From: Heteronotia binoei
Lineage: Eukaryota
Assembly (NCBI RefSeq): GCF_032191835.1
Contig: NC_083239.1
Location: 34,844,001-34,908,000, forward strand
DNA: 64,000 nt
Direction of reading: 5' to 3'
The notes beneath the pieces were generated by a model. It was not told where the DNA came from. It saw only the letters and a program-made list of their open reading frames with translations, and made no database searches. Both the position numbers and the translations under genes were made by a program. This document shows positions 13,075 through 63,232 of the stretch, in pieces (positions within the stretch are counted from its first letter, which is position 1; every line of letters starts with the position of its first letter).

Positions 13075-14085
13075 TCAGAGCTCCGTCTGAGCAACATTGA
13101 CGTGGTATTCACCTTGAAGATATGAACTTGAGAACTGTCCAGCTCTTTTTCCTCTATTGTTATCTGTCAGACTTTGGCAGCAGGGCCAGCAACACCAGTG
13201 GGGTAGCAAAGTCTGCAGTTTGCGGCACATGCCAATCCAACAGTCAATAAAAGCTTGACGGACTGCCTGGGAGGAGAAGTAGAAGATGACAGGATCTATG
13301 GAGGCATTGAAGGTGCTGAAGAGGAAACCTTCCACTCTCCAGGGAGGGCCCTGTTTTTGTACGAAGCCCACGATGTGGGAAATGTTGAAGGGGCTGAAGC
13401 AGATGACAAAACTGATCAAAGTGGCCACGGCCAGGCCCATGGCTCGTTGCTTCTTGCGGACAGGGAAGCTGGGCAGGGAGTTCAGGATCTGAATAACTTT
13501 CACATAGCAGAAAAGAGTGATGATGAAAGGGAGGCAGAAGAAGACAAGACAGATTTCCAGTCGGATAGGGATGATCACATCAGGGGAGAAATTCTCATAG
13601 CAATGGGAGGTATTAGAAGAGCCTGGAAGGCTCCCGTTGGAAGCTTGGTATTTGGCAATGTAGATAATGCCGTAATGGGAGCAAACCAGCAGCCAGATAA
13701 AGACGCTGGCCGTGACTGCATAAATTGGCTTGCGCGTCAGCTTGTACTTGATAGGATGTCCAATGGACAGGTAGCGATCCACACTGACTGCTGTGAGGAA
13801 AAGGATACTGGTGTATACACTGCCATAGAGGAAGTAGCCAGTGAGTGGGCAGAGCAGAGGAGGAAGAGGCCAAATCGTGTCGGAGGTGACCTCCACCATC
13901 TTGAAGGGGAGAAAAAGGAGAAGGAGGATGTCAGAAATGGTCAGGTTGAACAAGAGGATGTCTATGGGAGTTGGCTTCTTGGACACTTTCAGCAGGAATA
14001 TGTAGAAGGCCAGGAGGTTGGAAGGGAGGCCAGTCAGGAGAATGAAGATGCAGGAAGTAAGCTCCACAGCCTTCAGAACCGTCAT
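13075..14085 (-). CDS. FFAR2: FFAR2-like short-chain fatty acid receptor (class A GPCR), 336 aa, intact, subfamily A
   Basis: Seven hydrophobic segments; GLPSN (TM1), NLTISD (TM2), DRY, CYENF in ECL2 (same as human FFAR2), IRLEIC (Arg5.39), NISH (His6.55), WR (Arg7.35), DPVIFY. One-to-one orthology versus FFAR3 not resolvable by eye. Confidence 0.93.
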   Translation of the reverse strand: MTVLKAVELTSCIFILLTGLPSNLLAFYIFLLKVSKKPTPIDILLFNLTISDILLLLFLPFKMVEVTSDTIWPLPPLLCPLTGYFLYGSVYTSILFLTAVSVDRYLSIGHPIKYKLTRKPIYAVTASVFIWLLVCSHYGIIYIAKYQASNGSLPGSSNTSHCYENFSPDVIIPIRLEICLVFFCLPFIITLFCYVKVIQILNSLPSFPVRKKQRAMGLAVATLISFVICFSPFNISHIVGFVQKQGPPWRVEGFLFSTFNASIDPVIFYFSSQAVRQAFIDCWIGMCRKLQTLLPHWCCWPCCQSLTDNNRGKRAGQFSSSYLQGEYHVNVAQTEL

Positions 14086-14134
14086 CTTAGCTTCTCTAAA
14101 GGAAGGAAGGGATGATAAGATATCAAAATATTAT

Positions 14135-14225
14135 CCTTGGCGATCACCCATCCAAGTTCTAACCAGGGTTGACCATGCTTAGCTTCTGAGACCTGATGAA
14201 ATCGGGCTGTACCGTGCTGCCTTCC
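14135..14225 (-). mobile_element. 5S rRNA-derived SINE head
   Basis: Reverse complement resembles 5S rRNA (gaagctaagcatggtcaaccctggttagaacttggatggg). Confidence 0.6.
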
Positions 14226-14335
14226 CTCCTAAAAGCACATTACAGAACATTTTTTAAAAAGAACTATCACTGCCAAGAAAGAAAAAGTAGGTTCTAACCA
14301 ATGTTGAGCACTTGAAAGACCCACTCAGTCCAATA

Positions 14336-14607
14336 GAAGAAGAAGAATTGCAAATTTATACCCCGTCCTTCTCTCTGAATCAGAGACTCAGAGCAGCTCA
14401 CAATCGCCTATATCTTCTCCACTCACAACAGACACCCTGTGAGGTGGTTAGGGCTGAGACAGCTCTCCTAGAAGCTGCCATTTCAAGGACAACCTCTGCT
14501 AGAGCTATGGCTAACCCAAGGTCATTCCGGCAGGTGCAAGTGGAGGAGTGGGGAATCAAACCTGGTTCTCCCAGATAAGAGTCCACGCACTTAACCACTA
14601 CACCAAA
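14336..14607 (-). mobile_element. tRNA-derived SINE with (TCT)n tail
   Basis: Head tttggtgtagtggttaag..ggtttgattcccc; homologous copies at 38385-38674 and 57745-58125. Confidence 0.8.
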
Positions 14608-15222
14608 GAGTTCTGCACATGACCAGACTATAAAAATGTAAGAGCACAAGAATTGCCCTGATAGATCAGACCAATGGTCCACTTAGTCCAGCATCCTGTC
14701 TCACAAGGTGACCATCCAGTTGCTATGGAGGGCCAACAACTGGGTATGGAGGCCAAAAAGAAACTCAGCTTAGCCAGCAACATGTTTAATAATGTTGCAG
14801 TTTGCAAATGGGCTTCTGCTGGAGAAAGCAGGCCCCAAGGGAACACATATGTTCTAAGTGCAGAGATAAACAGATCTAGGGGAGTCAGCTAAGACCATCT
14901 GGGTAAACAACTCCAGAAGAATGTAGCAGGCACTTGAAATGTATGTGGCAGTCTGGAGTGGAAACTTACTCTTAAGTTTTGGTTCTGGCTACAGCTATAG
15001 CTTTTGCTCATGAACAAGGCTATGTAACCTAAGAGTATAATTCAAAGGAACACTCTGGAAGGGTATGATTTTCTCTTTGCAGATTCATTTCTGTGGTCCC
15101 CATTTGCCTGGCAAATAAATCTTTAAGGTTGCTACCCAGTTGTCTGCCTGTTTTGGACCTATGGTTAGACTAGAAATCTAGTGAATTCCACCACAACCTG
15201 CAGAAAGCAATATTCAGATGAC

Positions 15223-15363
15223 CAGGGCTGGCCCTAGACTGTCTGGCACCCTAGGCAAGGCTATGTTCTGGCACCCCTCCTCTGAGTCACATGGGGGCAC
15301 CCAATTCAGAAGGCTGGCGCCCTAGGCAATTGCCTAATTTGCCTAGTGGTAGGGCCAGCCCTG
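15223..15363. mobile_element. hAT-type MITE (family E, short)
   Basis: CAGGGCTGGCCCTA terminal inverted repeats; perfect TSD CAGATGAC. Confidence 0.88.
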
Positions 15364-15529
15364 CAGATGACATCTATTGTGGTGGAGCATAGGGAAAGAG
15401 ATGGTCCTGCAGATAAGATGGGCACAGCCTTGGAGGCTTTGTATGTTAGCCAATACTTTGAATGGAGTCTGGTAACTGATGGACAGCCAATAGAATGACC
15501 GAGAACAAGAGTAATATGCATGCTCCTCC

Positions 15530-16254
15530 CAGGGCCAGCTCGCCGACTAGGCAAACTAGGTGTTTGCCTAGAGCGCTGGGAGGGTGGGTGCGCCAAATTG
15601 GGCTCCCTACCCCCTCCTGGTGCCCCAGGCAAGCACCCAGTTTGCCTGCCTCCTCTGGCCACTCCTGCCGCCCGCCACGGCTGCTGCCTTGCCCGCCCCT
15701 TCCCTTCACTTTGCCCCCACCACCGCCCCTCCTTTCCCTTCCCTTCCCTGCCCCGTCACCATGATCACAGTGGGCGGTGAGGCGATGGCTGTACCCCCTT
15801 CCCTCCCCCCTTCCCTTCCCTTTTGTGCCCCGCCACTGTGATCACAGCGGGCGGCGAGGCAGCAGCGGCACCCCCTTCCCGTCCCTTCGCTTCTTGCCCC
15901 CCCCCCCACTCACAGCCTGATGCTGGTGAAACTTATCTTTAGAACGACCGGGCTGAAATGAAGGCTTGGCTCCCCCCTCCCTTCCGGTTCCAGAAAGGAG
16001 GGGGAGCCAACCAAGCCTTCATTTCAGCCCGTTCGTTCTAAAGATAAGTTTTATCCGCGTTGGGCTGTGAATGCTTGGGGGGGGGGGAAGGGATGGGAAA
16101 GGGGTGTGCCGCTGTCTTGCCGCAGTGGGGGGTTGCAATGGGGGGTGGTGGAAGGCGACGGTGGGAGGCACCTTTTGGCGGCACTGGCAGGGGGCAGCGG
16201 GGGGGGGGCAGAGGGTGCCTGCCTAGGGCACCACAATTCCATGGACCGGCCCTG
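15530..16254. mobile_element. GC-rich hAT-type MITE (family E, long) with internal hairpin
   Basis: CAGGGCC...GGCCCTG ends; TSD gctcctcc/ggtcctcc. Confidence 0.8.
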
Positions 16255-17834
16255 GGTCCTCCTAGGCCTTGATAATAACAAAGCTCTGGTATTCCACACT
16301 AACTACAACTTGCTTATGTAAAGTGCATTACAGTAGTCTAGTCTCAACGCCACCATGATGTGGATCCCCTCCACACAATTAAAGTTTAAAACTGAAATCT
16401 GGCAAAGAACCCTCAAATTCCGTCTTCGACTTGTGAATTTTTTCCAGATGTCAAATGTGTGCAAAATTTCATCAGACCATGATGAACATGGCATTAAGAC
16501 TGTTAACTTGTTTCATGAGACTTCACATCGAGAATGTTAGCTCATTCTGACAAATTTCCACCAACAGAGACTCTATATATTATATACTAACAGATTTTGC
16601 AACCAACCTATCTATGGCTACACCCACTCACGGCTGGATAACAAAAAAACTATAAGCAATTGTTTGAAACTGAATTTTCCAATGCAGACAAGTCAGTTGA
16701 GCATCAAACCATTGCTATAGTACAAAACTCCCATGTGCCTCAAGATTTATCTGCCTGCCTTTCTAAATATTAACGCCGGAAGATTTTCTCATCTTACGTG
16801 CGTTCTAGATCGACAGCCGCTCCATTCAGTCTCCCAGGAAAAGTACAACCAAAGCCTTCTGAGGGTGACCCAGCCAAAGGTCTCCTTTCTGCCTTCCGAA
16901 AGCAGTCAGCTGAGTCTGATCAAATGCATTATAAAAATACTGTGCAGTGCAGGGAACACAGTGGGCTGCTCTGTGATATTAGGAGGAAGCAAGCCACCCA
17001 AGAAAACTTAAAAAGAGGCAATGGACTTTGGGAAAGACTATCAGCGATCACCGCTTTATGGAGAAACTGCTGGAGTGGTCAAGAGGGACTTACGGTACTT
17101 TGAATGACTTTTTTTACAAGCATGTTTTTTTCACCGTGCCTTTTCAGAACTTCAAAAATATATCAGATCTTTGCATTTGCAGGTCCCAGCGGATGCTGGC
17201 CAGCATCACCGATGATGACCGCTTGCTAATTTTGGCAGATGGAGCTGGCTCAGCAAGCAGGGGCTGCTTGAAAAAAAACCCAGCACCTTACCAAAGCCAC
17301 AGTCAGGAAGTGATGTGTCCAGCGACTCTGACAGCTCTCCCACCTCCCTGGTCTCTTCTGCAGCTCCAGGAGAGCAGACCAAAACCAGAAGGTTACAGTT
17401 ATCCAAAGGTATTTCATACACTTTACTGAGACCACATTCTGAGCTTAACAAAAGTGCAGCCAGCCAGCCTGATGAAGAAGCAATCATGGGGCATGACCCA
17501 TTGCTAAACAAAACACTACACTGCTATTAAAACAGATTGCTCTGTAAAAATATTTGGACGCCTGTGGCAATCTGGGCCAATTTTCAGAAATCCATGAACT
17601 CTGGTGTACAAAATGATGAGATGACAAGATAAAGGCAGCCTGAGATTGCCGCTTTCTAAGTGCTTGACCACTTCCCCATTTTTGTAGTTCCAGAAAAGCA
17701 AAGTACAGCAAACTGGTGGCATTAAGGAGTCTCTGCTGCTTCACAAGAATGGCTGGTGGGATGGTTAGTGGCTAAGATGGTTTATAGGACTGTTTCCCCC
17801 TCCACCACCACCATGGTTTAGATCCTACCAGCTT

Positions 17835-18280
17835 TCCACAGAGTTGCCAGGTCCCACTCAGGAAATATCTGGAGACTTTGGAGGTGGAGCCAGGAGGCTT
17901 TGGGGGGTGATGGAGCCAGGTTGTGGCAAGCACTATTGAACTCTGAAGGGAGTTCTGGCCATCATATTTAAAGGGACCACACTTCTTTTTAAATGCCTTC
18001 CGTTCATTGAAAATAATGAAGGATGGGGCACCTTCTTTCGGGTTTCATAGAACTGGACCCCACTGAAACTTGTTTTGTGTGTGTGTGAAGAGGCATTAAA
18101 TGCTATACTGAAAATCTGGTGTCTCTACCTCAAAAAACAGCCCCTCCCCCCAAGCCCCAGATATCCACAGATCAATTCTGCATTATACTCTTTGGGAACT
18201 GGTCTCCATAGGATATAATGGAGTGCCTACTGGGCATTCAATCCCCGCACTTTCTGATAACCCTGAAGCAGGGTTTTTTT
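17835..18280 (+). mobile_element. hAT-type MITE (family B, older copy)
   Basis: Homologous to 4802-5573 with more substitutions. Confidence 0.75.
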
Positions 18281-19039
18281 GGCGTTCCATTCTGTATAGA
18301 TATTTGTATGAGACTGTATTTCTATGAGATTGCTTTAGTAAGATTCTTTATATATTTTCAAGTGGAATGACAAAACATTATATTTGTTAAAATCTTTATT
18401 GGAGGCTGGTTTATCATGGAAACCTTTGGTTTTTGTATCTTCCCAACTGGAGATTAGCAACCCTATTTCCACAAGTACAAGAGGGAAGCCCAGTGATCTT
18501 GATCAGTTCCCTTCCTGTCTCCCCACTCATCTCACATGGGTTTTGTTCATGTGATTACATGAGCCTCAAGCACTTTTTTTTTTGGAGGGGGGGCGGAATG
18601 CAAGGAAAACTAATAGGATCCTGTGCACAAGAAGAGCAAAAGCATAAGATAAGCCATGTTGGATCAGACCAATGACCATCCAGTCCAACACTCTGTCATA
18701 CAGTAGCCAAAACAAAAACAGGTGCCATCAGGAGGTCCACCAGTGGGGCCAGGACACTAGAGGTTAAGGACCAGAGAATACAATATATAGATCTATTCTG
18801 CCTGCCTGCTCTGCCTTTTTTAAATTTCAGTGGGTTCTGGTTGGTGGTGACCTTCTTTACATTTTTAGGTGTCTAGGTCTTGGACTGTTTATTCCTGTTT
18901 TATTGTATTATTGTGCCATTAAAGGTTTGTTTGATTGATTGAAGTATTTGTGAGCCATAGGAAGTGTACTCAGCTCATGTCAACATGGACGATTAGATTT
19001 TCAATTCAGTGGTAAAGGTTTCATGCTGATTGTATGAAG

Positions 19040-19330
19040 ATGAATTTTGGAGCCAAGGACATTTTGCCTAGGGGAAATCAGGTAATATGCCAGCTTTTGA
19101 ATCATTGTAGACATTTGCTTCATGTTTGCTTTAGAACCAGAGTCCAGAGTTGTTTCAAATGGGTGCAGAATTTCATTTCAGCTCAACTCTGCATGATACC
19201 AAATAGAAGGAAGAAGCTTTTCCCAAGAACCTCAGTGGGAGATGTTCATTTCCTACTAAATCCCTCTAAGGATCCTATGGGTGACTTTTATTTTAACACT
19301 TACCAATACATTTTTCAAAGGATGTAATTT
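19040..19330 (-). mobile_element. Degenerate L1-like ORF2 C-terminal fragment
   Basis: Translation resembles the squamate L1 ORF2 C-terminus (QKLAYYLISPRQ); many stops. Confidence 0.4.
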
Positions 19331-19436
19331 ATTAATTAATTCCAGAGTTATAGTATTTTGTCTAAAAACTTATGTGATAATTAGACTTCCTTGAATAAAT
19401 AAATAAATAAATCCCAGAAGCAATTTCAGATCTTAC

Positions 19437-19530
19437 TTGTATCCTAGTTTGGCGGGTCTCTACTCTGTCTTTAAGAATGGAAAGAATCACTGTGGATGGT
19501 AAGTCTACTTTGAGCCTTCCAAAAGCTGTT
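19437..19530 (-). other. Candidate non-coding 5' exon of the 13075-14085 gene
   Basis: Donor CAA|GTAAGAT (GT at 19436-19435); ctaggatacaa|gtaagatctgaaattgcttctggga matches the 20825 copy; predicted intron ~5.3 kb. 5' end approximate. Confidence 0.6.
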
Positions 19531-20754
19531 GGACAGATGTGTTCTAAGAAAGCCCTGAAGTGGCAATAACTGGTTGGGAAAATATTGGAGGCAGCTGAGA
19601 TGGACTACATACCCTCATAACTTGGCAAATTCAAAGAAGAAGCAAGAAAACGCTGAGAGCCATTATATGTTTGGACACTACAGGCTGAGTTTGTGAATGA
19701 AATTAGCGGATGTGAATTTTTACGGTGTATTATGCTATATTTTGAGAATATGATCCAATTTAGATAAATACAGCCATGAACTTACAATAGCTACTTGGAC
19801 TCTATTTTGAGTCTATTGGACTACTCTATGGTCTTGTTATTCGTAGTGATATATCAATATGCAGAATGTACGATCTTTATTTCTTTATCTTCTCTTCTTA
19901 TCTATATATCTTTCACTTTTATCCTATTTCTCTCCCCTCCCTTTTTATGGAATATTATAAAAAAACCTAAAACCTGGGGAAAAAAAGAAAAGAAAGAAAT
20001 CCCTGAAGCATCTATCTAGTATAGGAAGGCCACCAGCTTATATGGCATTTTGGAGGAAGTTGAGGAATCAGGAAGTTAGCCCATTAGAACTGTAAAAGAA
20101 GTCAGGGAAGTATTGCCAGCCGATACTCATGATATGCAACTTTTTTTAGAACAGTGGAAGGAAAGATTTCTTTAAAAATGATTTTAAAAATCAATTTCTT
20201 TAAAATGAAACAAAACCATGACCTATGGCCTTAAGATATATTATGTCTTCGACTTCTGAAGGAGTCTAATTCTATGAACATGGTGGAGAAAAGTTGTTTC
20301 CAAAACTAAGATAACAGGTGGACTGCCTATTGTCACTCTTGTCAGTTTCTGGAAAAGGGAACAATAAGGGGTTCACTGAATTATGCTTTTTTAAAAAAAA
20401 TGTGTACCTTTTTCTATTCTGAGTGGAATACTTGCTTCCTGCTTCCTCTATAACATCACATAAACCTACTTTCCTTCCTGTACTGAATGGAGACTTCAGG
20501 GTTTTTGTGGTAAGTGTGTGACTATGTCTATCCACAGGTATTTGGAAGAAACAAAATAAACTCATAGATGGATTTACTCACAAGCTAATGAAGCAAGAGT
20601 TTAGGGTTTCAGATTATGAGGGAGGACTTTAAATCGAAAAAAAAATACAAAAATATTAAATTCCCATTTTTGGGGGGGAGAGGGTCAATATTGTGGGTCT
20701 CATAAGTACAACGCAGCCTAGTTCCTCATCATGTCTTGATCTGGCCCTGTGTGC

Positions 20755-20825
20755 CTTATCTATTGAATCATCTGTAGCAGACCCCTCTTGGAGAGCGAGT
20801 GGAGAGTGAGCCATCTAGGATACAG
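20755..20825 (+). other. Candidate non-coding 5' exon of the 27446-28066 gene
   Basis: Donor CAG|GTGAGAT at 20826; ctaggatacag|gtgagattagaagttgcttttggaa is homologous to the minus-strand 19437 and 1087 exons; same strand as the downstream coding exon. Confidence 0.6.
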
Positions 20826-21357
20826 GTGAGATTAGAAGTTGCTTTTGGAAGGAATATTCTTTCAAAGTATTTATTTCAAAATGTTTTCAGTGACAGATTA
20901 AAAGAAAGTGTCAACACCAGGTCCGCCTTTCTCCAATAAAGGGAAAGGTGAAGAGCCTCCAAAATGTTTGAACTGATATTCTTGAGAAGAGGTATAGTCT
21001 TTCGTTTTTGCATCAGGGCTTTTTTTGAGCAGGAATGCACAGGAACTCAGTTCTGACTGGCTTGGTATCAGGCAGTGTGCTCTAATACGCAAATGAGTTT
21101 CTGCTGGGCTTTTTGTGTAAAACAATGGTGATGTTAGGGGATGTAGCCTGATATGCATATGAGTTCCTGCTGGGCTTTTTCTATACAAAAAGTCCTGGCA
21201 TCATGTATGGTTAAGTTCAAATGAAACTTTGCTCACATTTGAAATTGGGCAGCATCGCACCACTGGAAGGGAGAATTTCAGCGCTTTTTGAGCTTTCACT
21301 TTTGAAATTTGACTGAATGGGAGGAACTTTACAAAGAACTTCAGTTATAACTTTTTA

Positions 21358-21486
21358 TGGTGTGGTTTGCCATTGTCTTCCCCAGTCGTCTATACTTTAC
21401 CCCCAGCAAGCTGGGTAATCATTTTACCAACCTCAGAAGAGTGGAAAGGCTGAGTCAACCTTGAGTCAGCTACCTGAACCCAGCTT
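21358..21486 (-). mobile_element. Sauria-type SINE, 3' half (split by CR1)
   Basis: Reverse complement aagctgggttcaggtagc..gttgactcagcc..aatggcaaaccac. Confidence 0.75.
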
Positions 21487-23406
21487 ACGAACATAAGATC
21501 AGGCCAACGGCCCATCCAGTCCAACACTCTGTGTCACACAGTGGCCAAAAAACCCAAGTGCCATCAGGAGGTCCACCAGTGGGGCCAGGACACTAGAAGC
21601 CCTCCCACTGTGCCCCCCAAGCACCAAGAATACAGAGCATCACTGCCCCAGACAGAGAGTTCCAACAATATGCTGTGATAAATAGCCACTGATGGACACC
21701 TGCTCCATATGCTTATCCAATCTCCTCTTGAAGCTGTCTATGCTTGCAGCTGCCACCACCTCCTGTGGCAGTGAATTCCATGTGTGAATCACCCTTTGGG
21801 TGAAGAAGTACTTCCTTTTATCAGTTTTAACCTGACTGCTCAGCATTTTCATTGAATGTCTACAAGTTGTCATGTTGTGAGAAAGGGAGAAAAGTACTTC
21901 TTTCTCTACCTTCTCTATCCCATGCATAATCTTGTAAACCTCTCTCATGTCACCCCGCAGTTAAAGTTTCTCCAAGCCAAAGAGCCCCAAGCGTTTTAAC
22001 CTTTCTTCATAGGGAAAGTGTTCCAACCCTTTAATCATTCTAATTGCCCTTTTCAGCACTTTTTTCAATGCTATAATATCTTTTTTGAGGTGCAGTGACC
22101 AGAATTGTACACAGTATTCCAAATGAGACCGCACCATCAATTTATACAGGGGCATTATGATACTGGCTGATTTGTTTTCAATTTCCTTCCTAATAATTCC
22201 CAGCATGGCGTTGGCCTTTTTTATTGCAATCGCACACTGCCTTGACATTTTCAGTGAATTACCTACCACGATCCCAAGAACTCTCTCTTGGTCAGTCTCC
22301 GCCAGTTGACACCCCATCAACTTGTATTTATAGTTAGGATTTTTGGCCCCAATGTGCATTACTTTGCACTTGGCCACATTGAACCTCATTTGCCATGTGG
22401 ACGCCCACTCGCCCAGCCTCAACAGATCCCTTTAGAGTGCCTCACAATCCTCTCTGGTTCTCTCCACCCTGAACAATTTAGTGTCATCTGCAAACTTAGA
22501 CACTTCACTGCTTACTCCCAACTCCAAATCATTAATGAGCAAGTTAAAAAGCATCGAAACCAGTGTTGAGCCCTGTGGCACCTCACTGCTTACCATCCTA
22601 TGCTGAGAAAATTGCCCATTTATACTCACTCTCTGTTTCCTATTAATTAGCCAGTTTTTGAGCCACAAGAGGACCTGTCCTTTTACTCCATGAATCTCGA
22701 TGAGGAACAATCAAAAGCTTTCTGGAAGTCAAGGTAAACAACATCTATTGGGTCCCCCTTGTCCACATGTTTGTTCATCCCCTCAAAGAACTCTAGCAGA
22801 TTAGTGAGACAACATCTTCCCTTACAGAACCCATGCTGAGTCTTCCTCAATAACTTTTGTTTATCAATGTGCCTACCAATTCTCTCTTTGATAATGGTTT
22901 CCACCAAATTTCCCAGTATTGAAGTCAGACTGACTGGCCTGTAATTTCCTGGATCTCCTCTGGAACCCTTTTTAAAGATGGGGATGACATTTGCTACCTT
23001 CCAGTCCTCAGGAACAGAGGCAGATTTCAATGAAAGATTACATATTTTTGTTGGGAGATCCACAAGTTCACATTGGAGTTCTTTCAGAACTCTTGGATGT
23101 ATCCCAACCAAATTACCAGTTTTTAATTTGTCTACCAGTTGTAGGACCTCCTGACTATGGTCTTTCAACACCCCTCCCAAAATTAGCAGTTCTGGAGTGG
23201 ACAAACACTTTTCATCTTCCACAGTGAAGATGAAGGCAAAAAATGCATTCAGCTTCTCAGTCATTTCCCTATCCTCCTTCATAATCCTTTTACCCCTTGG
23301 TCATCCAAGGGCCCCATTGCCTCCCTGGCTGGTTTCCTGCTTCTAATGTATTTGAAGACATTTTTATTGTTGGTCTTTATGTTTTTTTGCAATTCGCTCC
23401 TCATAG
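21487..23406 (-). mobile_element. CR1 LINE, 5'-truncated (~1.9 kb), degenerate RT
   Basis: Broken RT ORFs 22683-23282, 22432-22710 (VPQGS, FADDTKL), 21961-22422 and 21640-21948. Confidence 0.93.
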
Positions 23407-23486
23407 TCCGCCAGGATCGAACTCAGCTTGTGAGCAGAGCTTGGACTGCAGTACTGCAGCTTACCCACTCTGCACCATGGGGCTCT
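23407..23486 (-). mobile_element. Sauria-type SINE, tRNA-like 5' head (split by CR1)
   Basis: Reverse complement gagccccatggtgcagagtgggtaagctgcagtactgcagtccaagctctgctcac..gagttcgatcctggcgga. Confidence 0.75.
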
Positions 23487-24329
23487 CTGATCTTCTCTAA
23501 AGCTTTCTTTGAATTCATCTGTTTCCTCTTCCTTATATCGGGGCTTTCAGGACTATGCTGTTTCTCAAGAACCACGTGTGCAGCCTCCAGGTTGTTTTCT
23601 TGCTGCTCATCCATCACTGAAGATATCCCAGGGGCCATCAGACTTCTTGTCAAGTCACTCCCTCTTCTCCTCCTCTTGTCCATTTTCCCTTCCTCCTGTG
23701 CTCAGTCCTCTGCCAGCCACTTGGACCTTCTCTGAGGAGAAAGCCAGGGTATCAAAGAAGAAAATAAAGGGTATTTAAAATTATAAATAAAGGATTAAAT
23801 GAACATAAATGGAGGCATCCTATGTATACCCTTCTAAATTACTTATTTGGAGCATGGTTCAGTCAGTTTTCAACATTTTAAATCCCTTTGTTGATCCTAG
23901 GAGAGATATAAGCATTGGCATGTGTCTCTCTTAGTTTGTTAAGAACATTTCTGTATGCCACCTCTCCAGTAAACCTGTTTGAGGCAGTTTCATAGTATTT
24001 TACATTTTCCGGATTGTGTCCAGGATCCAATACTCAACAGTTTTGTTTTGCGCTGTGGATTAAAAATCAGGAGCTTTGGTTTACTATGGAGGCTTAGAGC
24101 TGATTGCAATTACTTTATCACTTTAATGAATCCATTCTTGGCTTTGAATGGCTCACACTGATAGGTCAGATAAATTAAAATCAGGGCTTTTTGTAGCAGA
24201 AACTCCTTTGCATATTAGGCCACACACCCCTTATGTAGCCAATCCTCAAAGAGCTTACCGGGCTCTTCATACAAGTATTGTAAACTCTGCTTTACTGCAT
24301 GGGTATGTGTGCATGTATGGAAAGGCTGC

Positions 24330-24700
24330 ACTTAGTGAAAACTGATACATACTGGGCCTGTACCAAGATGAAAATATATTGGAAATATATACATGAAGAG
24401 ATCCAAAATATTTTAAGAACCAAATTCCTGATGAAACTAGAGTCTATTCTATTGGCAATCTTGCCAGACAAGAACTTCACAAGACTTAGATATATGTTGA
24501 CAGCTGCTAGAGTAACACATTTGCAATTAAATGGAAGACAGAAGACTGTCCTACAATAGAGGTCTGGAAAGGAAAACTAGCTGAATATGCAACAGTGGCA
24601 AAGCTAACTAAATAGAAGACCACTAAAAGAATTTCAGCAGAAATTGCAAGCTTATTACTCATATTATGGAACAAAGTAGGAGTCTATTGCTTCAGACCAA
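24330..24700 (+). mobile_element. Degenerate L1-like ORF2 C-terminal fragment
   Basis: YW..IHEEIQNIL..ESILLAIL..YMLTAARV resembles the L1 region following the zinc knuckle. Confidence 0.55.
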
Positions 24701-26004
24701 CACGGCTGCCCACTAGGATTTTACTACTCATATTATGGGGAAAGTTAAATACCTTGGTTCTTGAGAAAAGTGACATATTATTAAAACTGAAAGCAGATCA
24801 GAGCCAAAAAAGATAATCCACAGTGGTTCTCATGAGCATTAAGCCTGGGGAGAACTGATGTGGTTTGTGTGATTCATCTGCTGAAACTAACTTTGGTTTC
24901 ACTGATAGCATATGTGCCCATATTAAAGGATACTCTTGGTTTTTCGCAGTGCATGCTGTCGTTTTTGAGAGCTGCTGTTCCAATGACTGCTAAGTCAGCA
25001 GCTTTTGAATGAAAAGATCCCAAAGGACAGCTTGATTATATGACATAACATCCCTTGTGATGTGCAACTGCAGGGATCTATGGAGCGTATTCTAGATTAC
25101 CCTTCATTTGGGGACAACTGGCTGTTACACAAGCCTCGCCAGTATTCTTCATGAAAAACTGATGCCAGCCCTTGGAGCAGGCACAGGGGTTTGACCCTCC
25201 CCCTCCTCAGATGGAATCACAAGGGTGGGAGGAGCCTATCAAGGCTCAGTGCAGGAGCACTGGCCAATTGGGGGTCGGCTAGCTGGCCAGGTCTGGCGGT
25301 GACTGCCAACCCTTGACCATTCCAGCTCAATGTGAGCTCCCCACCCACCCACACTTTTTCTTAAAACCATGTGGAATTAGCTAATTGTGGGGCTGAGCAG
25401 GAATTATTTTGGGCCTCACTCAAATTGGCCATGAGGGGGCTTTTTTTGTTTTACCTGCTCTGCATGGTCTGAGAAGGCAAGGCCTAACTTGGCCTGATAC
25501 AATAGGCTAGGCCCTTATGAAGATGGGAAAAGCATGGTTTGGGAGGGGTTTCGATCTGGCAAACACCTTGAGATCAGTGATGGGAGGGTGGGGTCCTCAA
25601 ACCAAGTACCTAGAGGCTTGGCAGTCTAGGTAGGGTTGCCAACCTCCAGGTGGGGCCTGGAGATCTCCTGCTTTTACAACTGATCTCCAGCTAGCAGAGA
25701 TCAGCTCCCCTGGAGAAAATAATAATATAAACAACCAAAGGTTATAGTGACCAAATTACTATGTAATACTGGTGTGCATGTACAAAAAAGCAAAATTGAC
25801 AAAAGAATTGCAAAATTCATAAATAATCTTCCACAAAAGGAGTCTCAATGTGCAGGTTGTTGACTTTAGAAGGTCCTGCTTCGATTAAAACTCTTCCAGC
25901 ATAGGGTGCTCCAGAAACTCTTAATGAAAATGTCCCCATTTAAAAAAATGGCTGCTTTGAAGAAGCTGAGGCCACTCTTCTCCCCAAACCCCACTCTCTA
26001 CAGG

Positions 26005-26355
26005 TTGTTGTTCAGTCACACATTTGAGTCTGACTCTTTTGTGACCCCATGGACCAAGTCATATCAGGCCTTCCTGTCTTCCACCATCCTCCGAAGTCTG
26101 CTCAAATTTGTGTTAGTTACATCAGTTATGCTATCCACCCATCTCATCTTTGCTGTCTCCTTCTTCTTTTGCCTTCTGTCTTTCCCAGAATCAGCATCTT
26201 CTCCAGTGAGTGCTCCCTTCTCATTGGGTGGCCAAAGCATTTGAGCTTCAGCGTCACCATCTGACCTTCCAGGAAACAGTCAGGGTTGATTTCCCTTAGG
26301 ACTGACTGATTTGATCTTGCAGTTCAAGGGATTCTCAAGAATCTTCTCCAGCACC
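26005..26355 (-). mobile_element. RTE/BovB LINE 3' fragment
   Basis: Typical BovB reverse-strand text (gactctttgtgaccccatggac..tggccaaagcatttgagcttcagc..gcagttcaagggattctcaaga..ctccagcacc). Confidence 0.8.
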
Positions 26356-27267
26356 TCTCTACAGGATCCACCCCAAAGCCTCCAGGTATTTTCCAACCAC
26401 ACACCTGGCAACCCTACCTTGGAGTTCAACCATGCTTGTCACAACCTTGCTCCTGGCTTCACCCCCAAAGTCTCCTGGCTCCACCCCCAAAGTCCTCAGA
26501 TATTTCCTGAGTTGGACCTGACAGCCCTAAGTCCAGGTGACCCAATTGGGGGCCTCTTTGGGGTTGGGGAAGCATATGACGAGCCTTAAGGCTTTGCAGT
26601 TGTGGGCAGGGATGTGCCCCCCCACTCATGCACTGAGCCAGGGAGGGTTTGCCCTGTTAGGAAGCTTGCCTTGCAAGCTCAATGCAACCCATGCTTTAAA
26701 TGTAATGAAATGGTGCAGATCAGCTTATATGTAAATAAAATTCCTAGTTTAAGTCAGGGGTGGAATTCTAGCAGGAGCTCCTTTGCATATTAGGCCACAT
26801 ACCCTTGATGTAGCCAATCCTCCAAGAGCTTACAAGGCTCTTTTTTGTAAGCTCTTGGAGGCTTGGCTACATCAGGGGGTGTGGCCTAATATGCAAAGCA
26901 GCTGCTGCTAGAATTCCACCCCTGGTTTAACCCATAACTTGTGTGGTGTTTCAATTGAGGGGTGAGTGGGCAACAGATGCCCTAGAACATTAACCAGCAT
27001 CCTGTGCGACACCTGCGGATTCTGTGGCTGATAAGCTATTGGAAACTGTTTGACAAAGATAGGAAGTGTAAAAACCACCGAAGTATGTCATGTCTAATGT
27101 TTGGGTTAAATATTTTTTGCTATGACTACAGAGCAGAATTAAAGTCCCATGGGAGAGGGAATAGCCTTTGCTGAATAACGCAGAAGACCACAAGTGAACT
27201 CTTAGTCTTCACTTCAGATTTCCTTATTAGATGTAGGAAAGGAATTGCCTGCCTTTATTCCATAGCA

Positions 27268-27402
27268 CAGGGGTGGCCAACGGTAGCTCTCCAGATGTTT
27301 TTGCCTACAACTCCCATCAGCCCCAGCCAGCATGGTCAATGGCTGGGGCTGATGGGAGTTGTAGGCAAAAAACATCTGGAGAGCTACCGTTGGCCACCCC
27401 TG
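27268..27402. mobile_element. Palindromic hAT-type MITE (family F)
   Basis: CAGGGGTGGCCAAC terminal repeats and full-length hairpin; TSD ccatagca/ccatagct. Other copies at 30114-30248 (perfect TSD CCTTATAT) and 30782-30916. Confidence 0.88.
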
Positions 27403-27408
27403 CCATAG

Positions 27409-27434
27409 CTGATGATCCCTTCTTTCCCTTGCAG
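27409..27434 (+). promoter_or_regulatory. 3' splice acceptor of the coding exon
   Basis: CTGAT, then polypyrimidine tract, then CAG at 27432-27434, 11 nt before the ATG; same cag|aagctgagaggATG context as the other paralogs. Confidence 0.75.
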
Positions 27435-27445
27435 AAGCTGAGAGG

Positions 27446-28066
27446 ATGGCCTCAGAGACTGTTGTCCTCGCTGTCTTCATCTTTACCTTCCTGATCGGTG
27501 TCCCATCCAACCTTCTGGCCTTCTACACGCTCCTGGTGAAACTGTGCCGCAAGCCAACCCCCATAGACCTCCTCTTGTTCAACTTGACCATTTCTGATAT
27601 TCTCCTTCTGCTTTTTCTGCCCTTCAAGATGGTGGAGGTCTCTTTCCACATGACCTGGCCTCTCCCCCCTTCCTTCTGCCCTCTCACCAGTTGCTGCTTC
27701 TACGGAAGTATGTACCAAAGCATCCCTTCCCTCATGACAATCAGTGTGGACCGCTACCTAGGTGTTGCATATCCCATCAAATACAAGTTGCATCGCAGGC
27801 CTGTCTATGCTCTAGTGGTCATCATCGTGCTCTGGTTGTTGGGTTTCTTCCATTGCAGCATTGTCTACATTTTCAGGCATGGAGGCTCCAACGAGAGCAT
27901 TCCGTACTCAGCTAATAGCTCCCGTTGCTTTGAGAATTTCTCCCCTGAGCAGCTCCATGTTGTCTTCTCTCTCCGTCTGGAGCTGTGCCTTGTCTTCTTC
28001 TGCCCCCCTTTCACCATCACACTCTTCTGCTATGTGAACATTTTCTGCATCCTGAATTCCCTTTGA
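27446..28066 (+). pseudogene. FFAR2-like gene truncated after TM5 (206-aa ORF), subfamily A
   Basis: ORF aligns to the 13075-14085 protein through TM1-TM5 (LPFKMVEV, DRYLGV, CFENFSP, LRLELC), then stops at TGA where the sequence switches into a MITE interior (28063-28356). Confidence 0.88.
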
Positions 28067-28356
28067 CAAACCTTTTAATATTTTCCCCCACCAAACAATG
28101 GGAAAACAACCAAAACATAAAGCAGACAGATGGCAATCTTCATCATGCCACTGTGGCCACAGAGGAGAAAGTAATTTAAAAAGCATGATGGGAGGAAGGT
28201 TTTCTTATGACCATTATAATTCAAGAAGCATTTTCAGGTAGATGCTGAGCTGATATAATTTAGTACACTTTGCAGTGATGTCAAGGGTCTGTGGCATATG
28301 CAAATGAGTTGTGCTAATGAGCTCTGGCACCTCTTTTCCTGTGAAATGACCCCTGA
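28063..28356 (+). mobile_element. 3' half of a long hAT-type MITE fused to the truncated receptor ORF
   Basis: Homologous to 29730-29900 and 30400-30500; ends gaaatgacccctg; 5' part absent. Confidence 0.75.
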
Positions 28357-29051: not shown

Positions 29052-29451
29052 CAGGGATGACCAAACTTGCTCAACGTAAGAGCCACATAAAATAAATGTC
29101 AGATGTTTGAGAGCTATGAGANNNNNNNNNNNNNNNNNNNNNNNNNNNNNNNNNNNNNNNNNNNNNNNNNNNNNNNNNNNNNNNNNNNNNNNNNNNNNNN
29201 NNNNNNNNNNNNNNNNNNNNNNNNNNNNNNNNNNNNNNNNNNNNNNNNNNNNNNNNNNNNNNNNGATGGAGGGAGAGGTGAAAACTTTCAATGCCTTCTC
29301 CAAGGCACTGGCTGGCTTGACTGGGATAAGTGATTTAAAGGGACAAATAATTTCTCCAAGCCAGCCCATGAGGTGATGGGGGCTTCAGAAGCCACACAAA
29401 ATCTGTGAAAGAGCCACATATGGCTCCTGAGCCACAGTTTGGCCACTCCTG
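29052..29451 (+). mobile_element. hAT-type MITE (family G), containing an assembly gap
   Basis: Perfect TSD TTCTAAAT; homologous to 63568-63889. Confidence 0.8.
29122..29264. other. Assembly gap (N run)
   Basis: 143 Ns. Confidence 0.99.
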
Positions 29452-47175: not shown

Positions 47176-48392
47176 CTTGATCTTCTAGCACAAGCCATAC
47201 CTGCAGCTCCCAACTTTCAGATCAGCCCTGTTAGAGCTCCCTCATTTCCTGTCAGTGAGCACAGCCTCCCACACACTCCTGGCTCCCACCACCACTTTAT
47301 GGACAGCTGAAGCAAAAATGGGAACTGAGGGAACTGGCACTCCGTAATGTCATAGTGTCACTTTCAACTGTGTACCAAGAAGAGACGTCACAGAATTATA
47401 TGATGCTCTAGGAGTGTCTCAAATCTTGACGAGTTTTACTATGGGGGTTTGGGAGAGTGCTTGAACCTTATGCCAGGTGTGCAACTGGATGTGACTTCAT
47501 GGCAGCACACAATGCTGTTTTCTACTGCCTTGGCCTCAAACGTTGCTGCGATTTTTCTAGCCCCTGAATGTATTTCTGATAATATTTAGGTTTCACGTAT
47601 AGTTTTTAATTATTGGCCCTACATTGGCTTGCGGTTAACCTTTTTGGTTTCTTGATTCAAGTCTTAAAGGTGCTACTGGACTCTTGCTTTTTTCTACTGC
47701 TACAGACAGACTGACACAGCTGCCCATCTTGATCTATTGCCTTCTTTGTACCAGCTGGCAACCTGACTGCAACCAGGGGTGAAATGTGCAGGGATGAAAA
47801 AATCACACCATGCCTTTCTATGAAACAAAAGCAAAACCTTTCCCCTTCTTTGCAAACCCTACTTCTGGAGCTTGACTGTCAGTAAGATGCATCATCTAGC
47901 GAACGTCAGATAAACGGGAAAGTATGTGAAATCAGAGAACTTCTCTCTAAAACCTTCCTGTCATACCTTCCCCCTTTAAACCCTGCCCTTATTTTGAGGA
48001 ATTCAAGGTGGCATACATGGCAGAGTGGGAATTTGAACTGTGGTTTCCCAGAAACTAAGCCAGCACTATAATTACTGTGCAACACTGGCTGTGGTTAATG
48101 CGACTTCAGTCAGAGACATTTAACTGAAATGGGTTTGGGTCTCGCCTGTACAACCTTCATTATAGCATGCGTCATCTACAAGCAGAATGAAACCATGCAA
48201 TTAAGCAACCTCATACCTGATATCTGTAAAAAAATCAAGATATGCACACAATATACAAATGTCAATCCAAAACAAACAAACGAACAAAAACCAAACAGAC
48301 AATTTACAACATACAATGGTGAATATACAATTCCAAAGCAGGAGTGAAGAAATTTAGACACTGGCATCTTTTTGCAAAAGTCTGTTTCGAGT

Positions 48393-49499
48393 CTAATGTT
48401 CCATGTGTATTTGGAACTTGGTACAATATGCTTCTTTTTCAGGGTTCAGTGCACTAACTTCCCAGGTCTTTGCGATGCGAACGCTGGCGGGGGATTCATT
48501 GGATGCACCAGTCCCGCCCAGTCCACTCGAAGTGGATAATCCAGCAGCCCCTGCTCCCTCATCATTGTCTCTGGGTTCCTTGCAGCAAGGCAAAGAGCAG
48601 CGTGATAAAATGGGACGGACTCTGAGGTACATGCCAGCCCAGCAAACACCGACGTTTCGTCGGATGGCGTTGGACGAGAAGAAGAAGATGAAAGGATCCA
48701 AGCAGGTGTTGAAGGAGCTGAGGGCAAAAGTATACTCTCTCCACGTTGGGTCTTTATAATAGATTACTCCAAAGATGTGGGAGATGTTAAAGGGGGCAAA
48801 GCAAAGAGTGTAATTGAGCAAAGTGACCAGAGCCAAGCCCACGGCCCTTTGTTTCTTGCGGGCCTGGATGTTAGGCAGGGAGGCCAAGATGCGGATTACA
48901 TTGACATAACAGAAGAAGGTGATGACAAAAGGAATGCAAAAGAGAACAATGCAGATTTCGAGCCGGAAGGGGTAGATGATCTTCCTCTGCTCTTCGTTGA
49001 ACTCCTTGAAACACACCACATGGTTGGAAGGGCGTTCTGACGACGGGATCGAATCATTGCGTAGGGACCTCACGACAAAGACTGTGCCGCAGTGGGAGCC
49101 AACAAATATCCAGATGAAGATGCTGGCCATCACTGCGTAGGCGGCCTTGCGTTTCATCCTGTACTTGATGGGAAACACCACCCCCAGGTAGCGGTCCACA
49201 CTGATGGCTGTGAGGAAAAGAGTGCTGATGGAGAGGCTGCTGTGGAAGGTGCAGCTGGTGACGGTGCACAGGGCTCTGTGGAAAGGCCATGCATTGTTTC
49301 GGGCTGCCTCCACCATTTTGAGAGGAAGGAAAACCAGAAGGATGACGTCCGATAAAGTCAAGTTGAGCAAGAGGATGTCTATAGGGGCCGGCTTCTTGCG
49401 GACTTTCACTAAGAATGTGTAGAAGGCCAAGAGGTTGGAAGGGAAGCCGATCAGGAAGGTGATGACATAGATAGCAAGAATAACTGTAAGGTTGGTCAT
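48393..49499 (-). CDS. FFAR2: FFAR2-like receptor, 368 aa, intact, subfamily B
   Basis: Uninterrupted 7TM ORF with GFPSN, NLTLSD, DRY, FRLEIC, NISH, WRE and DPFIFF motifs; long Ser/Thr-rich C-tail. Confidence 0.95.
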   Translation of the reverse strand: MTNLTVILAIYVITFLIGFPSNLLAFYTFLVKVRKKPAPIDILLLNLTLSDVILLVFLPLKMVEAARNNAWPFHRALCTVTSCTFHSSLSISTLFLTAISVDRYLGVVFPIKYRMKRKAAYAVMASIFIWIFVGSHCGTVFVVRSLRNDSIPSSERPSNHVVCFKEFNEEQRKIIYPFRLEICIVLFCIPFVITFFCYVNVIRILASLPNIQARKKQRAVGLALVTLLNYTLCFAPFNISHIFGVIYYKDPTWREYTFALSSFNTCLDPFIFFFSSNAIRRNVGVCWAGMYLRVRPILSRCSLPCCKEPRDNDEGAGAAGLSTSSGLGGTGASNESPASVRIAKTWEVSALNPEKEAYCTKFQIHMEH

Positions 49500-54350: not shown

Positions 54351-54384
54351 AACTAGCCAAATAGGGACAATTTATTTATTATTG

Positions 54385-54760: not shown

Positions 54761-54779
54761 GTGAGAGCACGTTTCCATG

Positions 54780-60495: not shown

Positions 60496-61024
60496 TAGGG
60501 TTGCCAATCCCCAGGTGGGGGCAGGGGATCCCCCGTTTGGAGGCCCTCCCCCCGCTTCAGGGTCATCAGAAAGCAGGGGGAGGGGAGGGAAATGTCTGCT
60601 GGGAACTCTATTATTCCCTACGGAGATTTATTCCCATAGAAAATCATGGATAATTGATCCACGGGTATCTGGGGCTCTGGGGGGCATGTGTTTTGAGATA
60701 GATGCACCAAATTTTCAGTACAGCATCTAGTGCCTCTTCCCAAAATATCCCCCAAGTTTCAAAACGATTGGACCAGGGGGTCCAATTCTATGAGCCCCAA
60801 AAGAAGGTGCCCCTATCCTTCATGATTTCCTATGGAAGGAAGGCATTGAAAAGGTGTGCCGTCCCATTGAATGTGATGGCCAGAACTCCCTTTGGAGCTC
60901 AATTATGCTTGTCACAGCCTTGATCTTGGCTCCACCCCTAATGTCTCCTGGCTCCACCCCCAAAGTCTCCTGGCTCCACCCCCAAAGTCCCCAGATATTT
61001 CTTAAATTGAACATGGCAACCCTA
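60496..61024 (-). mobile_element. hAT-type MITE (family B)
   Basis: TAGGGTTGCCA terminal inverted repeats; TSD ctactttg/ctacttct. Confidence 0.85.
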
Positions 61025-61910
61025 CTACTTCTCCAACTCCCACGTGCTGGCCCTGAGCACAGGGTGTTCCTTTATTAACCACCATTCTAAACTGGGGGAT
61101 TCCAGGATAAATTTACCAAAAACAGAATCCCCCAATAGGAGAAGATCATAACTTGCTGAATACTGAATGTGTTAATTAAGCATTGTAATGGGCCAAGCCT
61201 CCTGTTTTTGGTGAAGACTAAATTAGGAACAGGGCTACATATACTCCCCTGCCCCTGATTGAATACTTAAAAGGATTTGCATGGAAAATCAGTATAGATT
61301 TTCTCTCTTTCAATCAGTTAGCAGACAAGAGGCGGAGACGTGCAGGGATGAAAATCACTACACTTCCTCCATTGCACAAGTAAACCTCCTTCCCCTTTTT
61401 TGTCGCAGTCCTTTTACAGCTTTCTTGCCGGTATGAAATACCATTGATCAAATCCCAGCCTAATGAAAAAAAGATTATTTGAAATTAGAGAACTTTTCTC
61501 CAAAATCCGCCATTGTATATGTTTTTAAATCCCTGTCCTTGTTTTGAGGAATGCAGGGCAGTGTACATGGCAGAGCGGGAATTTGAACGGTGGTCTCCTA
61601 GATCCTAGGCCTATTTTCTAACCACCATGAGACTCTGGCTCTGGTTACTGTGTTTTCAGTCAGGGGTCATTTCGTGGAAATGCAGTTAGGTTGCACCTGT
61701 ACAACATTCATTGTAGCATGGGTCTGCAAGCCGAATGAAGCTGCTTATTTAAGGAATCGCATATTTGATGCCGACAAAGAAAAACGCGATCCAGATATGT
61801 ATATAAGATTCAAACATTAACATAAACCCCCCCCCCCCCATTTGACATGCAATTTTGAATTCGTAACTCCAAATCCAAAACTGGGGCAAAGGAATTTAGA
61901 CATCGGCAAC

Positions 61911-62093
61911 CAAGGCACTTTTTTGTAGCAGGAACTCCTTTACATATTAGGCCACACACCCCTGATGTAACCAGTCCTCCTAGAGTTTACAGTAGGTCCT
62001 GTACTAAAAGCCCTGTAAGCTCTTGGAGAATTGGCTACATCAGCGGTGCGTGGCCTAATATATAAAGTAGTTCCTGCTACAAAAAAAGCCCTG
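61911..62093. mobile_element. Palindromic MITE (family D) 32 bp past the receptor stop codon
   Basis: TSD tcggcaac/tcagcaac; absent at the paralogous site near 48360. Confidence 0.85.
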
Positions 62094-62125
62094 TCAGCAA
62101 CAATTCACAAAAGTCTGTTCTGGGT

Positions 62126-63232
62126 CTAGTGTTCTGGATGTCGATGGAACTTGGTGCAGTATGCTTCTTGCTCAGCATCCAGCGCGCTGAGCTCCCAGGT
62201 CTTTGCGGTGTGGCCAAAGGAACAGGATTCAGTGGACGTGCCAGTCCCTCCCAGTCCACTTGAAGTAGATAATGCACCAGTTCCTGCTCCTTCATCGTTG
62301 TCTCTGGGTTCCTTGCAGCAAGGCAAAGAGCAGCGTGATAAAATGGGACGGACTCTGCGGTACATGCCAGCCCAGCAAACATTGACGTTTCGTCGGATGG
62401 CGTTGGATGAGAAGAAGAAGATGAAAGGATCCAAGCAGGTGTTGAAGGAGCTGAGAGCAAAGGTATATTCTCTCCAGTTAGGGTCTTCATAACTTATCAC
62501 TCCAAAGACGTGGGAGATGTTAAAAGGGCCAAAGCAAAAAGCGTAATTGAGCAAAGTGACCAGAGCCAAGCCCACGGCCCTTTGTTTCTTGCGGGCCTCG
62601 ACGTTAGGCAGGGAGGCCAGGATTCGGATCACACTGACATAACAGAAAGAGGTGATGATGAAAGGGATGCAAAAGAGGACGAGGCACAATTCAAGCCGGA
62701 AGGGGTAGATGATCTTCTTCTGCTCTTCGTTGAACTCCTTGAAGCACACAACGTGGTTGGAAGGCAGCTGTGAGGGTGGTATTGAATCGTTGCGGAGAGT
62801 CCTCAATACAAAGACCGTGCTGCAGTGGGAACCGACCACCACCCAGATGAAGATGCTGGCTACCACTGCATAGATTGACCGGCGGTTCAGCTTGTACTTG
62901 ATGGGAAATGCCACCCCCAGGTAGCGGTCCACGCTGATGGCCGTGAGGAAAAGAGTGCTGATGTAGATGCTGCTATGGAAGGTGCAGCTGGTGACAGTGC
63001 AGAGGGCCCTGTGGAAAGGCCACTCATTGTCTTGGGCTGCCTCTGTCATCTTGAGGGGAAGAAAGATCAGAAGCATGATGTCCGATAAAGTCAAGTTGAG
63101 CAAGAGAATGTCTATGGGGGTTGGCTTCTTGCAGACTTTCATTAAGAATGTGTAGAGGGACAGGAGGTTGGAAGGGAAGCCGATCAGGAAGGTGATGACG
63201 TAGATAACAAGAATCACTGTGAGATTCGTCAT
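62126..63232 (-). CDS. FFAR2: FFAR2-like receptor, 368 aa, intact, subfamily B (close paralog of 48393-49499)
   Basis: Same length as and colinear with 48393-49499; DRY, FRLELC, NISH, WRE and DPFIFF motifs. Confidence 0.95.
   Translation of the reverse strand: MTNLTVILVIYVITFLIGFPSNLLSLYTFLMKVCKKPTPIDILLLNLTLSDIMLLIFLPLKMTEAAQDNEWPFHRALCTVTSCTFHSSIYISTLFLTAISVDRYLGVAFPIKYKLNRRSIYAVVASIFIWVVVGSHCSTVFVLRTLRNDSIPPSQLPSNHVVCFKEFNEEQKKIIYPFRLELCLVLFCIPFIITSFCYVSVIRILASLPNVEARKKQRAVGLALVTLLNYAFCFGPFNISHVFGVISYEDPNWREYTFALSSFNTCLDPFIFFFSSNAIRRNVNVCWAGMYRRVRPILSRCSLPCCKEPRDNDEGAGTGALSTSSGLGGTGTSTESCSFGHTAKTWELSALDAEQEAYCTKFHRHPEH

Follow-up and report, generated by a model that had tools for sequence, protein, structure and literature searches.

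Receptors of the FFAR2 type link gut fermentation products with immunity and metabolism, and the question raised by the locus described here is how several genes for such receptors came to stand side by side on one gecko chromosome, and when. The stretch that we analyzed, referred to below as the window, comprises 64,000 nucleotides from Heteronotia binoei, a member of the Gekkonidae (GCA_032191835.1, CM063341.1, 34,844,001-34,908,000). A preliminary description of its sequence had proposed five FFAR2-like G protein-coupled receptor (GPCR) genes with a single coding exon, three intact and two disabled, in two subfamilies, A and B. Searches of the window by tblastn with the three intact proteins, together with a listing of its open reading frames (ORFs), located exactly five FFAR-like loci where they had been described: three are intact (A1, B2, and B3), and two are pseudogenes (A2ψ and B1ψ). 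The two subfamilies also held, as separate clades, with amino acid identities of about 60% between A1 and A2, 82% between B2 and B3, and about 50% between A and B. NCBI annotation already labels these genes "FFAR2-like," and the H. binoei contig also bears a protein named "FFAR2-like [Heteronotia binoei]."

Our results make it probable that A and B are old, gecko-only subfamilies within a squamate-only branch of the FFAR2/FFAR3 group, and that most of the copies are shared with other geckos, with few later events in the Heteronotia lineage. According to this scenario, the squamate-only branch bearing A and B would have arisen by tandem gene duplication beside a conserved copy, C. In the Heteronotia lineage, a segment of at least 13 kb with an A2-type gene would then have been copied about 33 kb downstream, and the copy would have lost 1,017 bp, including the region from transmembrane helix 6 (TM6) to the C terminus, to become A2ψ. 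In the same lineage B1, which is still intact in Eublepharis, would have decayed through frameshifts, stop codons, and replacement of its 3' part.

The window is the middle of an FFAR2-type receptor gene cluster in H. binoei. The sequence upstream (locus L001, in which positions 15660-21074 equal window positions 1-5415 at 100% identity) holds the intact A2-type gene P0012, and the type C gene P0439 lies on the same chromosome as A and B, 61 kb after B3. In window coordinates, the order of the cluster is P0012 (+, -5.7 kb), A1 (-, 13 kb), A2ψ (+, 27 kb), B1ψ (-, 39 kb), B2 (-, 48 kb), B3 (-, 62 kb), and C (+, 124 kb). H. binoei harbors seven linked loci (two of the seven being pseudogenes) and at least five intact FFAR2-type paralogs. 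No further FFAR match was found within 10 kb past the window end, and only P0012 was found in the 15.6 kb before its start. With linked paralogs, pseudogenes, a lineage-specific gain (A2ψ) and loss (B1), and older shared copies as background, the cluster has the features of a birth-and-death tandem family.

The receptors are of the FFAR2/FFAR3 type and do not belong to another family, as was indicated by Pfam, by a ranking of solved structures, and by a rooted tree. Each intact ORF is one uninterrupted coding exon and matches Pfam PF00001 (7tm_1) with E values of 1e-37 to 1e-40 over 238 to 251 residues. When A1 and B2 were compared by phmmer with all solved structures in the PDB, human FFAR2 scored 273 bits with A1 and 275 bits with B2, FFAR3 about 245, FFAR1 120 to 131, and the next families at most 117. 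For the phylogeny, about 150 named relatives were collected by word searches with A1 and B2, and anchors were gathered by searching cluster representatives with a profile, looking up clusters, checking against the PDB, and running a third word search. The anchors were wallaby FFAR1, turtle FFAR1-like, lamprey and skate sequences, two mammalian FFAR2-type sequences, seven mammalian FFAR3 sequences, and birds; P0199, P0338, and P0341 were left out as human or possibly human. The search of representatives at 50% identity gave no clean mammalian FFAR2 or FFAR3 anchors, as these are merged into clusters with other representatives. The maximum likelihood tree has 94 rows (LG+C20+F+G4 with posterior mean site frequencies) and is rooted on wallaby FFAR1, with support given as ultrafast bootstrap/Shimodaira-Hasegawa-like approximate likelihood ratio test.

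In this tree the window genes fall inside an FFAR2/3 clade (98/94), and the exclusion of wallaby FFAR1, turtle FFAR1-like, and lamprey sequences is supported (98/92 and 98/94). The backbone of the clade is a polytomy of mammal FFAR2 (100/98), mammal FFAR3 (100/100), alligator, two turtle/bird clades, fishes, and a clade of 63 rows (89/95), and the last of these contains Sphenodon, amphibians, squamate clade C (98/95), and a squamate-only clade of A, B, and D (100/99). Clade D (97/86) consists only of non-gecko squamates, and clades A (100/97) and B (100/100) consist only of geckos. The best non-gecko match in the word searches had at most 63% identity to A1 and at most 59% to B2. Because A and B are gecko-only clades inside a squamate-only clade that stands apart from mammalian FFAR3 and FFAR1, the lizard-lineage expansion that had been proposed is supported, and the copies are not one-to-one orthologs conserved across amniotes. 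As for strict one-to-one orthology with mammalian FFAR2, the backbone is the polytomy just described, and A and B group with squamate C, amphibians, and Sphenodon.

In mammals, the gene order is FFAR1 - FFAR3 - FFAR2, which raises the possibility that mammalian FFAR3 has its squamate co-orthologs in A and B (and D), with C as the FFAR2 ortholog, in a mirror of that order. An FFAR1-like gene adjoins the A genes in Gekko and Eublepharis, and C stands at the far end in Heteronotia, an arrangement that resembles the mammalian one; some clade D proteins are named "FFAR3-like" by NCBI and UniRef, and the FFAR2/FFAR3 backbone is a polytomy. However, A1 and B2 score higher to human FFAR2 than to FFAR3, A+B+D groups with squamate C, amphibians, and Sphenodon and not with the separate mammal FFAR3 clade (FFAR3/GPR42), and published reports of FFAR3 come only from mammals (PMC10029227). 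We therefore regard co-orthology with FFAR3 as improbable.

Two features of the tree touch the wider family. A turtle and bird clade (Eretmochelys, Chelonoidis, Grus, and Mycteria; 100/100) lies apart from the main turtle FFAR2-like clade, and amphibians group with lepidosaurs rather than at the base. Both placements hint at older hidden paralogy among tetrapod FFAR2-type genes. The names given by NCBI ("FFAR2-like," "FFAR1," and "FFAR3-like") are also inconsistent.

How old, then, are the copies? The preliminary description had pictured an array with ongoing turnover, and the most direct form of that idea is a young, still-churning array, specific to Heteronotia or its genus, in which most copies are recent. 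Two of the five window loci are pseudogenes, a B-like pseudogene is present in Eublepharis too, and the B copies of sphaerodactylids cluster by genus in the tree. Synonymous divergence (dS) is 0.127 between P0012 and A2ψ, about 45% of the Heteronotia-Gekko distance, 0.26 to 0.34 between Heteronotia-Gekko orthologs, 0.42 between B2 and B3, and 0.71 between A1 and the A2-type gene. Since its dS lies below that of the Heteronotia-Gekko orthologs, A2ψ is a lineage-specific duplicate, and it is the only Heteronotia-lineage duplication among the copies. In this respect turnover stood; the picture of an array made mostly of recent copies did not. For each of A1, A2-type, B1, and B2, other gecko genera or families hold orthologs, and for A1, A2-type, and B1 these extend to Eublepharis. 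Eublepharis is at the base of both the A1 group (100/100) and the A2 group (100/98), and the A1 orthologs in Gekko, Euleptes, Sphaerodactylus, and Eublepharis are 70 to 84% identical.

Gene order points the same way. On Gekko japonicus KQ745156.1 it is FFAR1-like (+), A2-type (-), A1 (-), B2 ortholog (-), and B3-like (-), and in Eublepharis macularius it is A1 (-), P0134 (-), and P0130 (-), with other sequence between them and an FFAR1-like gene beside A1. The Heteronotia genes A1 (-), B1ψ (-), B2 (-), and B3 (-) follow the same order as both species; therefore, B1ψ is the positional counterpart of P0134. B3 occupies the same distal position as P0127 of Gekko japonicus.

Recent origin by tandem duplication was rejected for B2 and B3 in particular. 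Their nucleotide homology is confined to the coding sequence (CDS) plus about 350 bp, with no alignable flanks, their dS is 0.416, with 82% amino acid identity and a ratio of nonsynonymous to synonymous divergence (ω) of 0.23, and a Heteronotia-specific B2+B3 clade was rejected (log-likelihood difference of 56; approximately unbiased [AU] test, p = 1e-4). In its clade (100/99), B2 is joined only by gekkonid orthologs, Paroedura P0121 and Gekko P0122/P0123, and Eublepharis P0108, P0130, and P0132 lie below the whole B2/B3 group. Our results show that the A1/A2-type and B1/(B2/B3) duplications predate the split of Eublepharidae and Gekkonidae, and that the separation of B2 and B3 predates the divergence of Heteronotia, Paroedura, and Gekko. 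With the heavy decay of B1ψ added to these points, the young-array reading is largely refuted for the intact genes, and we consider it unlikely for the locus as a whole.

Several points weigh against an old, gecko-wide pair of subfamilies, or limit how closely their history can be read. Monophyly of A+B is weak (88/34), and the split between A and B could for that reason predate crown squamates. Pygopodoid geckos are absent from the sampling. Both mammal FFAR2 anchors (Perognathus, 278 amino acids [aa]; Bos, 316 aa) are defective, with internal deletions and long branches, and the case for "FFAR2-like rather than FFAR3-like" is therefore made from sequence similarity and from the position of the genes outside the FFAR3 clade. 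The dS between Gekko B paralogs is 0.27, which is lower than that between Heteronotia-Gekko orthologs (0.31 to 0.34 in this comparison) and lower than that between Heteronotia B2 and B3. This suggests gene conversion between the Gekko B copies, which is able to blur dating. The tree gives B3 no clear one-to-one ortholog, the branch of B1ψ is very long, and the B2+B3 group entered the AU test after a first tree had been seen. The cluster map covers the sequence on either side of window-equivalent 73 to 114 kb.

The features of the window and of the adjoining sequence are collected in Table 1.

Table 1. Receptor loci, duplicated segment, assembly gaps, and reverse transcriptase sequences, in window coordinates
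Feature	Position	Strand	Remarks
Assembly gap, 183 N	6416-6598	.	Second gap; among LINE reverse transcriptase fragments; outside any receptor gene
A2-type gene P0012	4.6-5.7 kb before window position 1	+	Intact, 357 aa; sixth family member
A1, single-exon FFAR2-like GPCR gene	13075-14085	-	336 aa; intact ATG-to-stop ORF; Pfam 7tm_1, E 3.5e-37
Segmental duplication, copy 2, ~13-15 kb	17814-30636	+	Collinear megablast blocks with L001 479-15500; 82-95% (mostly ~90%) identity
A2ψ, truncated duplicate of P0012	27446-28066	+	Codons 1-206 kept, stop at codon 207; TM6, TM7, and tail deleted
1,017-bp deletion junction	28062-28064	+	Alignment jumps from L001 10619 to 11636; deleted part is L001 10620-11635 of the paralog
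Assembly gap, 143 N	29122-29264	.	Outside all receptor ORFs; 1,056 bp 3' of the A2ψ stop
B1ψ, old subfamily B pseudogene	~38770-39546	-	From nucleotide alignment to B2/B3; start ATG kept at 39546
B2, single-exon FFAR2-like GPCR gene	48393-49499	-	368 aa; intact ORF; Pfam 7tm_1, E 1.1e-39
B3, single-exon FFAR2-like GPCR gene	62126-63232	-	368 aa; intact ORF; Pfam 7tm_1, E 9.4e-40
Type C FFAR2-like gene P0439	124,174-125,199 (window-equivalent); 34,968,174-34,969,199 (record)	+	341 aa; seventh family member
LINE-type reverse transcriptase ORF	40194-42284	+	696 aa; Pfam RVT_1, E 3e-39; adjoins B1ψ; outside the receptor family
Reverse transcriptase fragments	6964-7731 (RVT_1) and 22683-23282		

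The one recent duplication can be followed closely. A2ψ and P0012 are sisters in the tree (100/99) and have 94% nucleotide and 91% amino acid identity over 206 codons. They lie in two copies of a direct segmental duplication, of which copy 1, with the intact P0012, is directly upstream of the window. A deletion of 1,017 bp, with its junction at a short T-run microhomology, took away the last 455 bp of the A2 CDS and created a TGA stop, and tblastn found no homology to residues 205 onward anywhere nearby. The pairwise ω of P0012 and A2ψ over 206 codons is 0.31, which is uninformative on when A2ψ lost constraint.

A 143-N assembly gap lies inside the duplicated segment, and a misassembly there, for instance a haplotig around the gap that was collapsed or duplicated, could in principle have produced the duplication of P0012 and A2ψ or part of the array. 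Divergence between the copies amounts to about 10% over at least 13 kb, with several indels in addition, among them the 1,017-bp deletion. This is far above allelic divergence, and unique sequence including A1 separates the two copies; we consider an artefact extremely improbable. The flanks of the gap (28480-29114 and 29265-30113) are collinear, in the same order and on the same strand, with L001 13478-14107 and 14281-15144, and the interval between these matches is 174 bp in the paralogous upstream segment compared with 143 N in the window. Given this collinearity and the similar lengths, continuity across the gap is plausible. The idea that the 3' end of A2 is hidden in the gap was also rejected, since the deletion junction, about 1 kb before it, is sequenced in full and both flanks of the gap align collinearly with the paralog. 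The receptor gene findings are independent of this gap.

An inverted duplication of A1 and A2 was likewise considered and rejected: in inverted orientation the match is confined to the two CDSs (74%), and 14086-27445 contains no inverted repeat longer than 100 nucleotides. The A2-type gene lies on the opposite strand in Heteronotia (P0012, +) relative to Gekko (P0009, -), and the Heteronotia copies flank A1 on either side, a pattern indicative of local rearrangement, by inversion or by transposed duplication.

B1ψ is a long-decayed gene whose Eublepharis counterpart is still intact. It carries at least eight frameshifting indels (-13, -10, -1, +1, +5, +38, and others) and in-frame stops, its DRY motif reads DHF, and its homology is lost after about codon 255, where the 3' third has been replaced by sequence resembling a short interspersed nuclear element (SINE). 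In a smaller tree it was sister, on a long branch, to the intact Eublepharis gene P0134 (99/94), with which it shares its position in the cluster. P0134 has Gln in place of the Arg5.39 (human R180) that is found in all other members, and the B1 lineage may, judging from this residue, have left carboxylate sensing before its death in Heteronotia. On Eublepharis CM053291.1, about 8 kb from P0134, there is in addition an uncalled, inverted, frameshifted B-like pseudogene (L008 19340-20425); the cluster therefore has pseudogenes in a second gecko family as well.

The intact genes appear to be maintained by selection, with pairwise ω of 0.22 to 0.43 in all intact pairs. In human FFAR2, H140, R180, H242, and R255 are held to bind the fatty acid carboxylate (PMC4453067). 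This tetrad corresponds to H137/R175/H237/R250 in A1 and H136/R179/H241/R254 in B2 and B3, and it is kept in P0012; A2ψ keeps only the first two of the residues, the remainder being deleted. The intact genes would thus be expected to encode working class A GPCRs that bind carboxylates, with short-chain fatty acids as the default, through Arg5.39, Arg7.35, His4.56, and His6.55. The role of "microbial-metabolite sensor" that had been put forward would likewise follow from these conserved binding residues.

Around the tetrad, the pocket differs from that of the human receptor. Human Tyr238 (Tyr6.51) is Phe in A1, B2, and B3, human Tyr90 (Tyr3.33) is His in B2 and B3 (His86 in B2), human Tyr94 (Tyr3.37) is Ser in B2 only (Ser90), and human Cys141 is Tyr in A1. 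The changes at 3.33 in B2 and B3 and at 3.37 in B2 suggest that the subfamily B pocket has been remodeled. The stem branch of subfamily B is long (0.51 substitutions per site), and its extracellular loop 2 (ECL2) is distinct. Identity between Heteronotia and Eublepharis is 72 to 78% for A and B versus 91% for gene C (81% between C and Anolis); A and B are therefore the fast-evolving arm, and C is the slow one. It is possible, although we put it forward only tentatively, that A and especially B shifted their ligand specificity toward another chain length or toward another class of microbial, dietary, or endogenous carboxylate, with C keeping the ancestral short-chain fatty acid role. If this is true, the shift would amount to a lineage-specific, chemosensory-like radiation of metabolite receptors.

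Set against known systems, the gecko genes resemble human and mammalian FFAR2 (GPR43; 8j22/8j23/8y6w) as single-exon class A GPCRs with a DRY-type motif, the ECL2 Cys, and the four carboxylate-binding residues. They differ from it in being only about 40 to 50% identical, in forming multiple paralogs that are probably not its one-to-one orthologs, in their longer, Cys-rich C-terminal tails, and in the pocket positions listed above. Chicken has 26 FFAR2 paralogs and no FFAR1 or FFAR3 (Meslin et al. 2015, PMC4453067), which confirms the avian precedent that the preliminary description had named. The two systems share tandem multiplication in a sauropsid lineage, a retained tetrad, and signs of gene conversion. 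The chicken paralogs, however, are 83 to 99% identical and thus young or homogenized, whereas gecko A and B are 50 to 82% identical, old, and common to gecko families. Because the bird sequences fall in a different clade, the chicken and gecko expansions are, on this phylogeny, independent. Teleosts (ffar2a/ffar2b; Roy et al. 2023, PMC10029227) likewise have several ffar2-type genes, with ffar3 only in mammals, but the teleost copies come largely from whole-genome duplications and the gecko copies from local tandem or segmental duplication. The closest comparison is with the squamate clade C gene (P0439 in H. binoei), which belongs to the same family, lies on the same chromosome, and is 53 to 59% identical to A and B; it is effectively single copy in the sampled species and slow evolving, whereas A and B proteins evolve about three times faster.

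Our full-text literature searches found no lineage-specific FFAR2-type expansion in squamates or geckos. The event is of a familiar type, of which the gecko cluster is an older and more diverged case, and it represents an ordinary mode of GPCR family evolution. Squamates have a conserved FFAR2-like gene and a fast-evolving, repeatedly duplicated sister lineage, within which two old subfamilies, A and B, became fixed in geckos and have kept their synteny; the sole recent event in the window is a failed duplicate, A2ψ. This arrangement is useful for annotation, given the inconsistent NCBI names, and for the choice of receptors in ligand deorphanization.

In Gekko (L005 20918-21080) and Eublepharis (L009 20897-21014), a 315-aa gene with seven transmembrane helices lies on the opposite strand about 10 kb from the A genes. 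The nearest relative of the Gekko fragment is turtle "FFAR1-like," with 55 to 57% identity over 53 aa, and the 10 kb upstream of P0012 in Heteronotia showed no such gene.

The rest of the window is rich in repeats, including sequences of long interspersed nuclear elements (LINE; Table 1). A dispersed repeat of about 500 bp, with 73 to 92% identity between copies, is found at 2590-3090, 4801-5234, 10663-11193, 17840-18273, 46661-47177, and 60496-61026, and copies of it lie 1.1 to 1.9 kb 3' of A1, B2, and B3. The copies flanking A1 and B3 are 92% identical, far above the identity of the A1 and B3 CDSs (about 68%); the repeat would therefore be either a younger family or a tract that underwent conversion, and it is a candidate substrate for unequal exchange.

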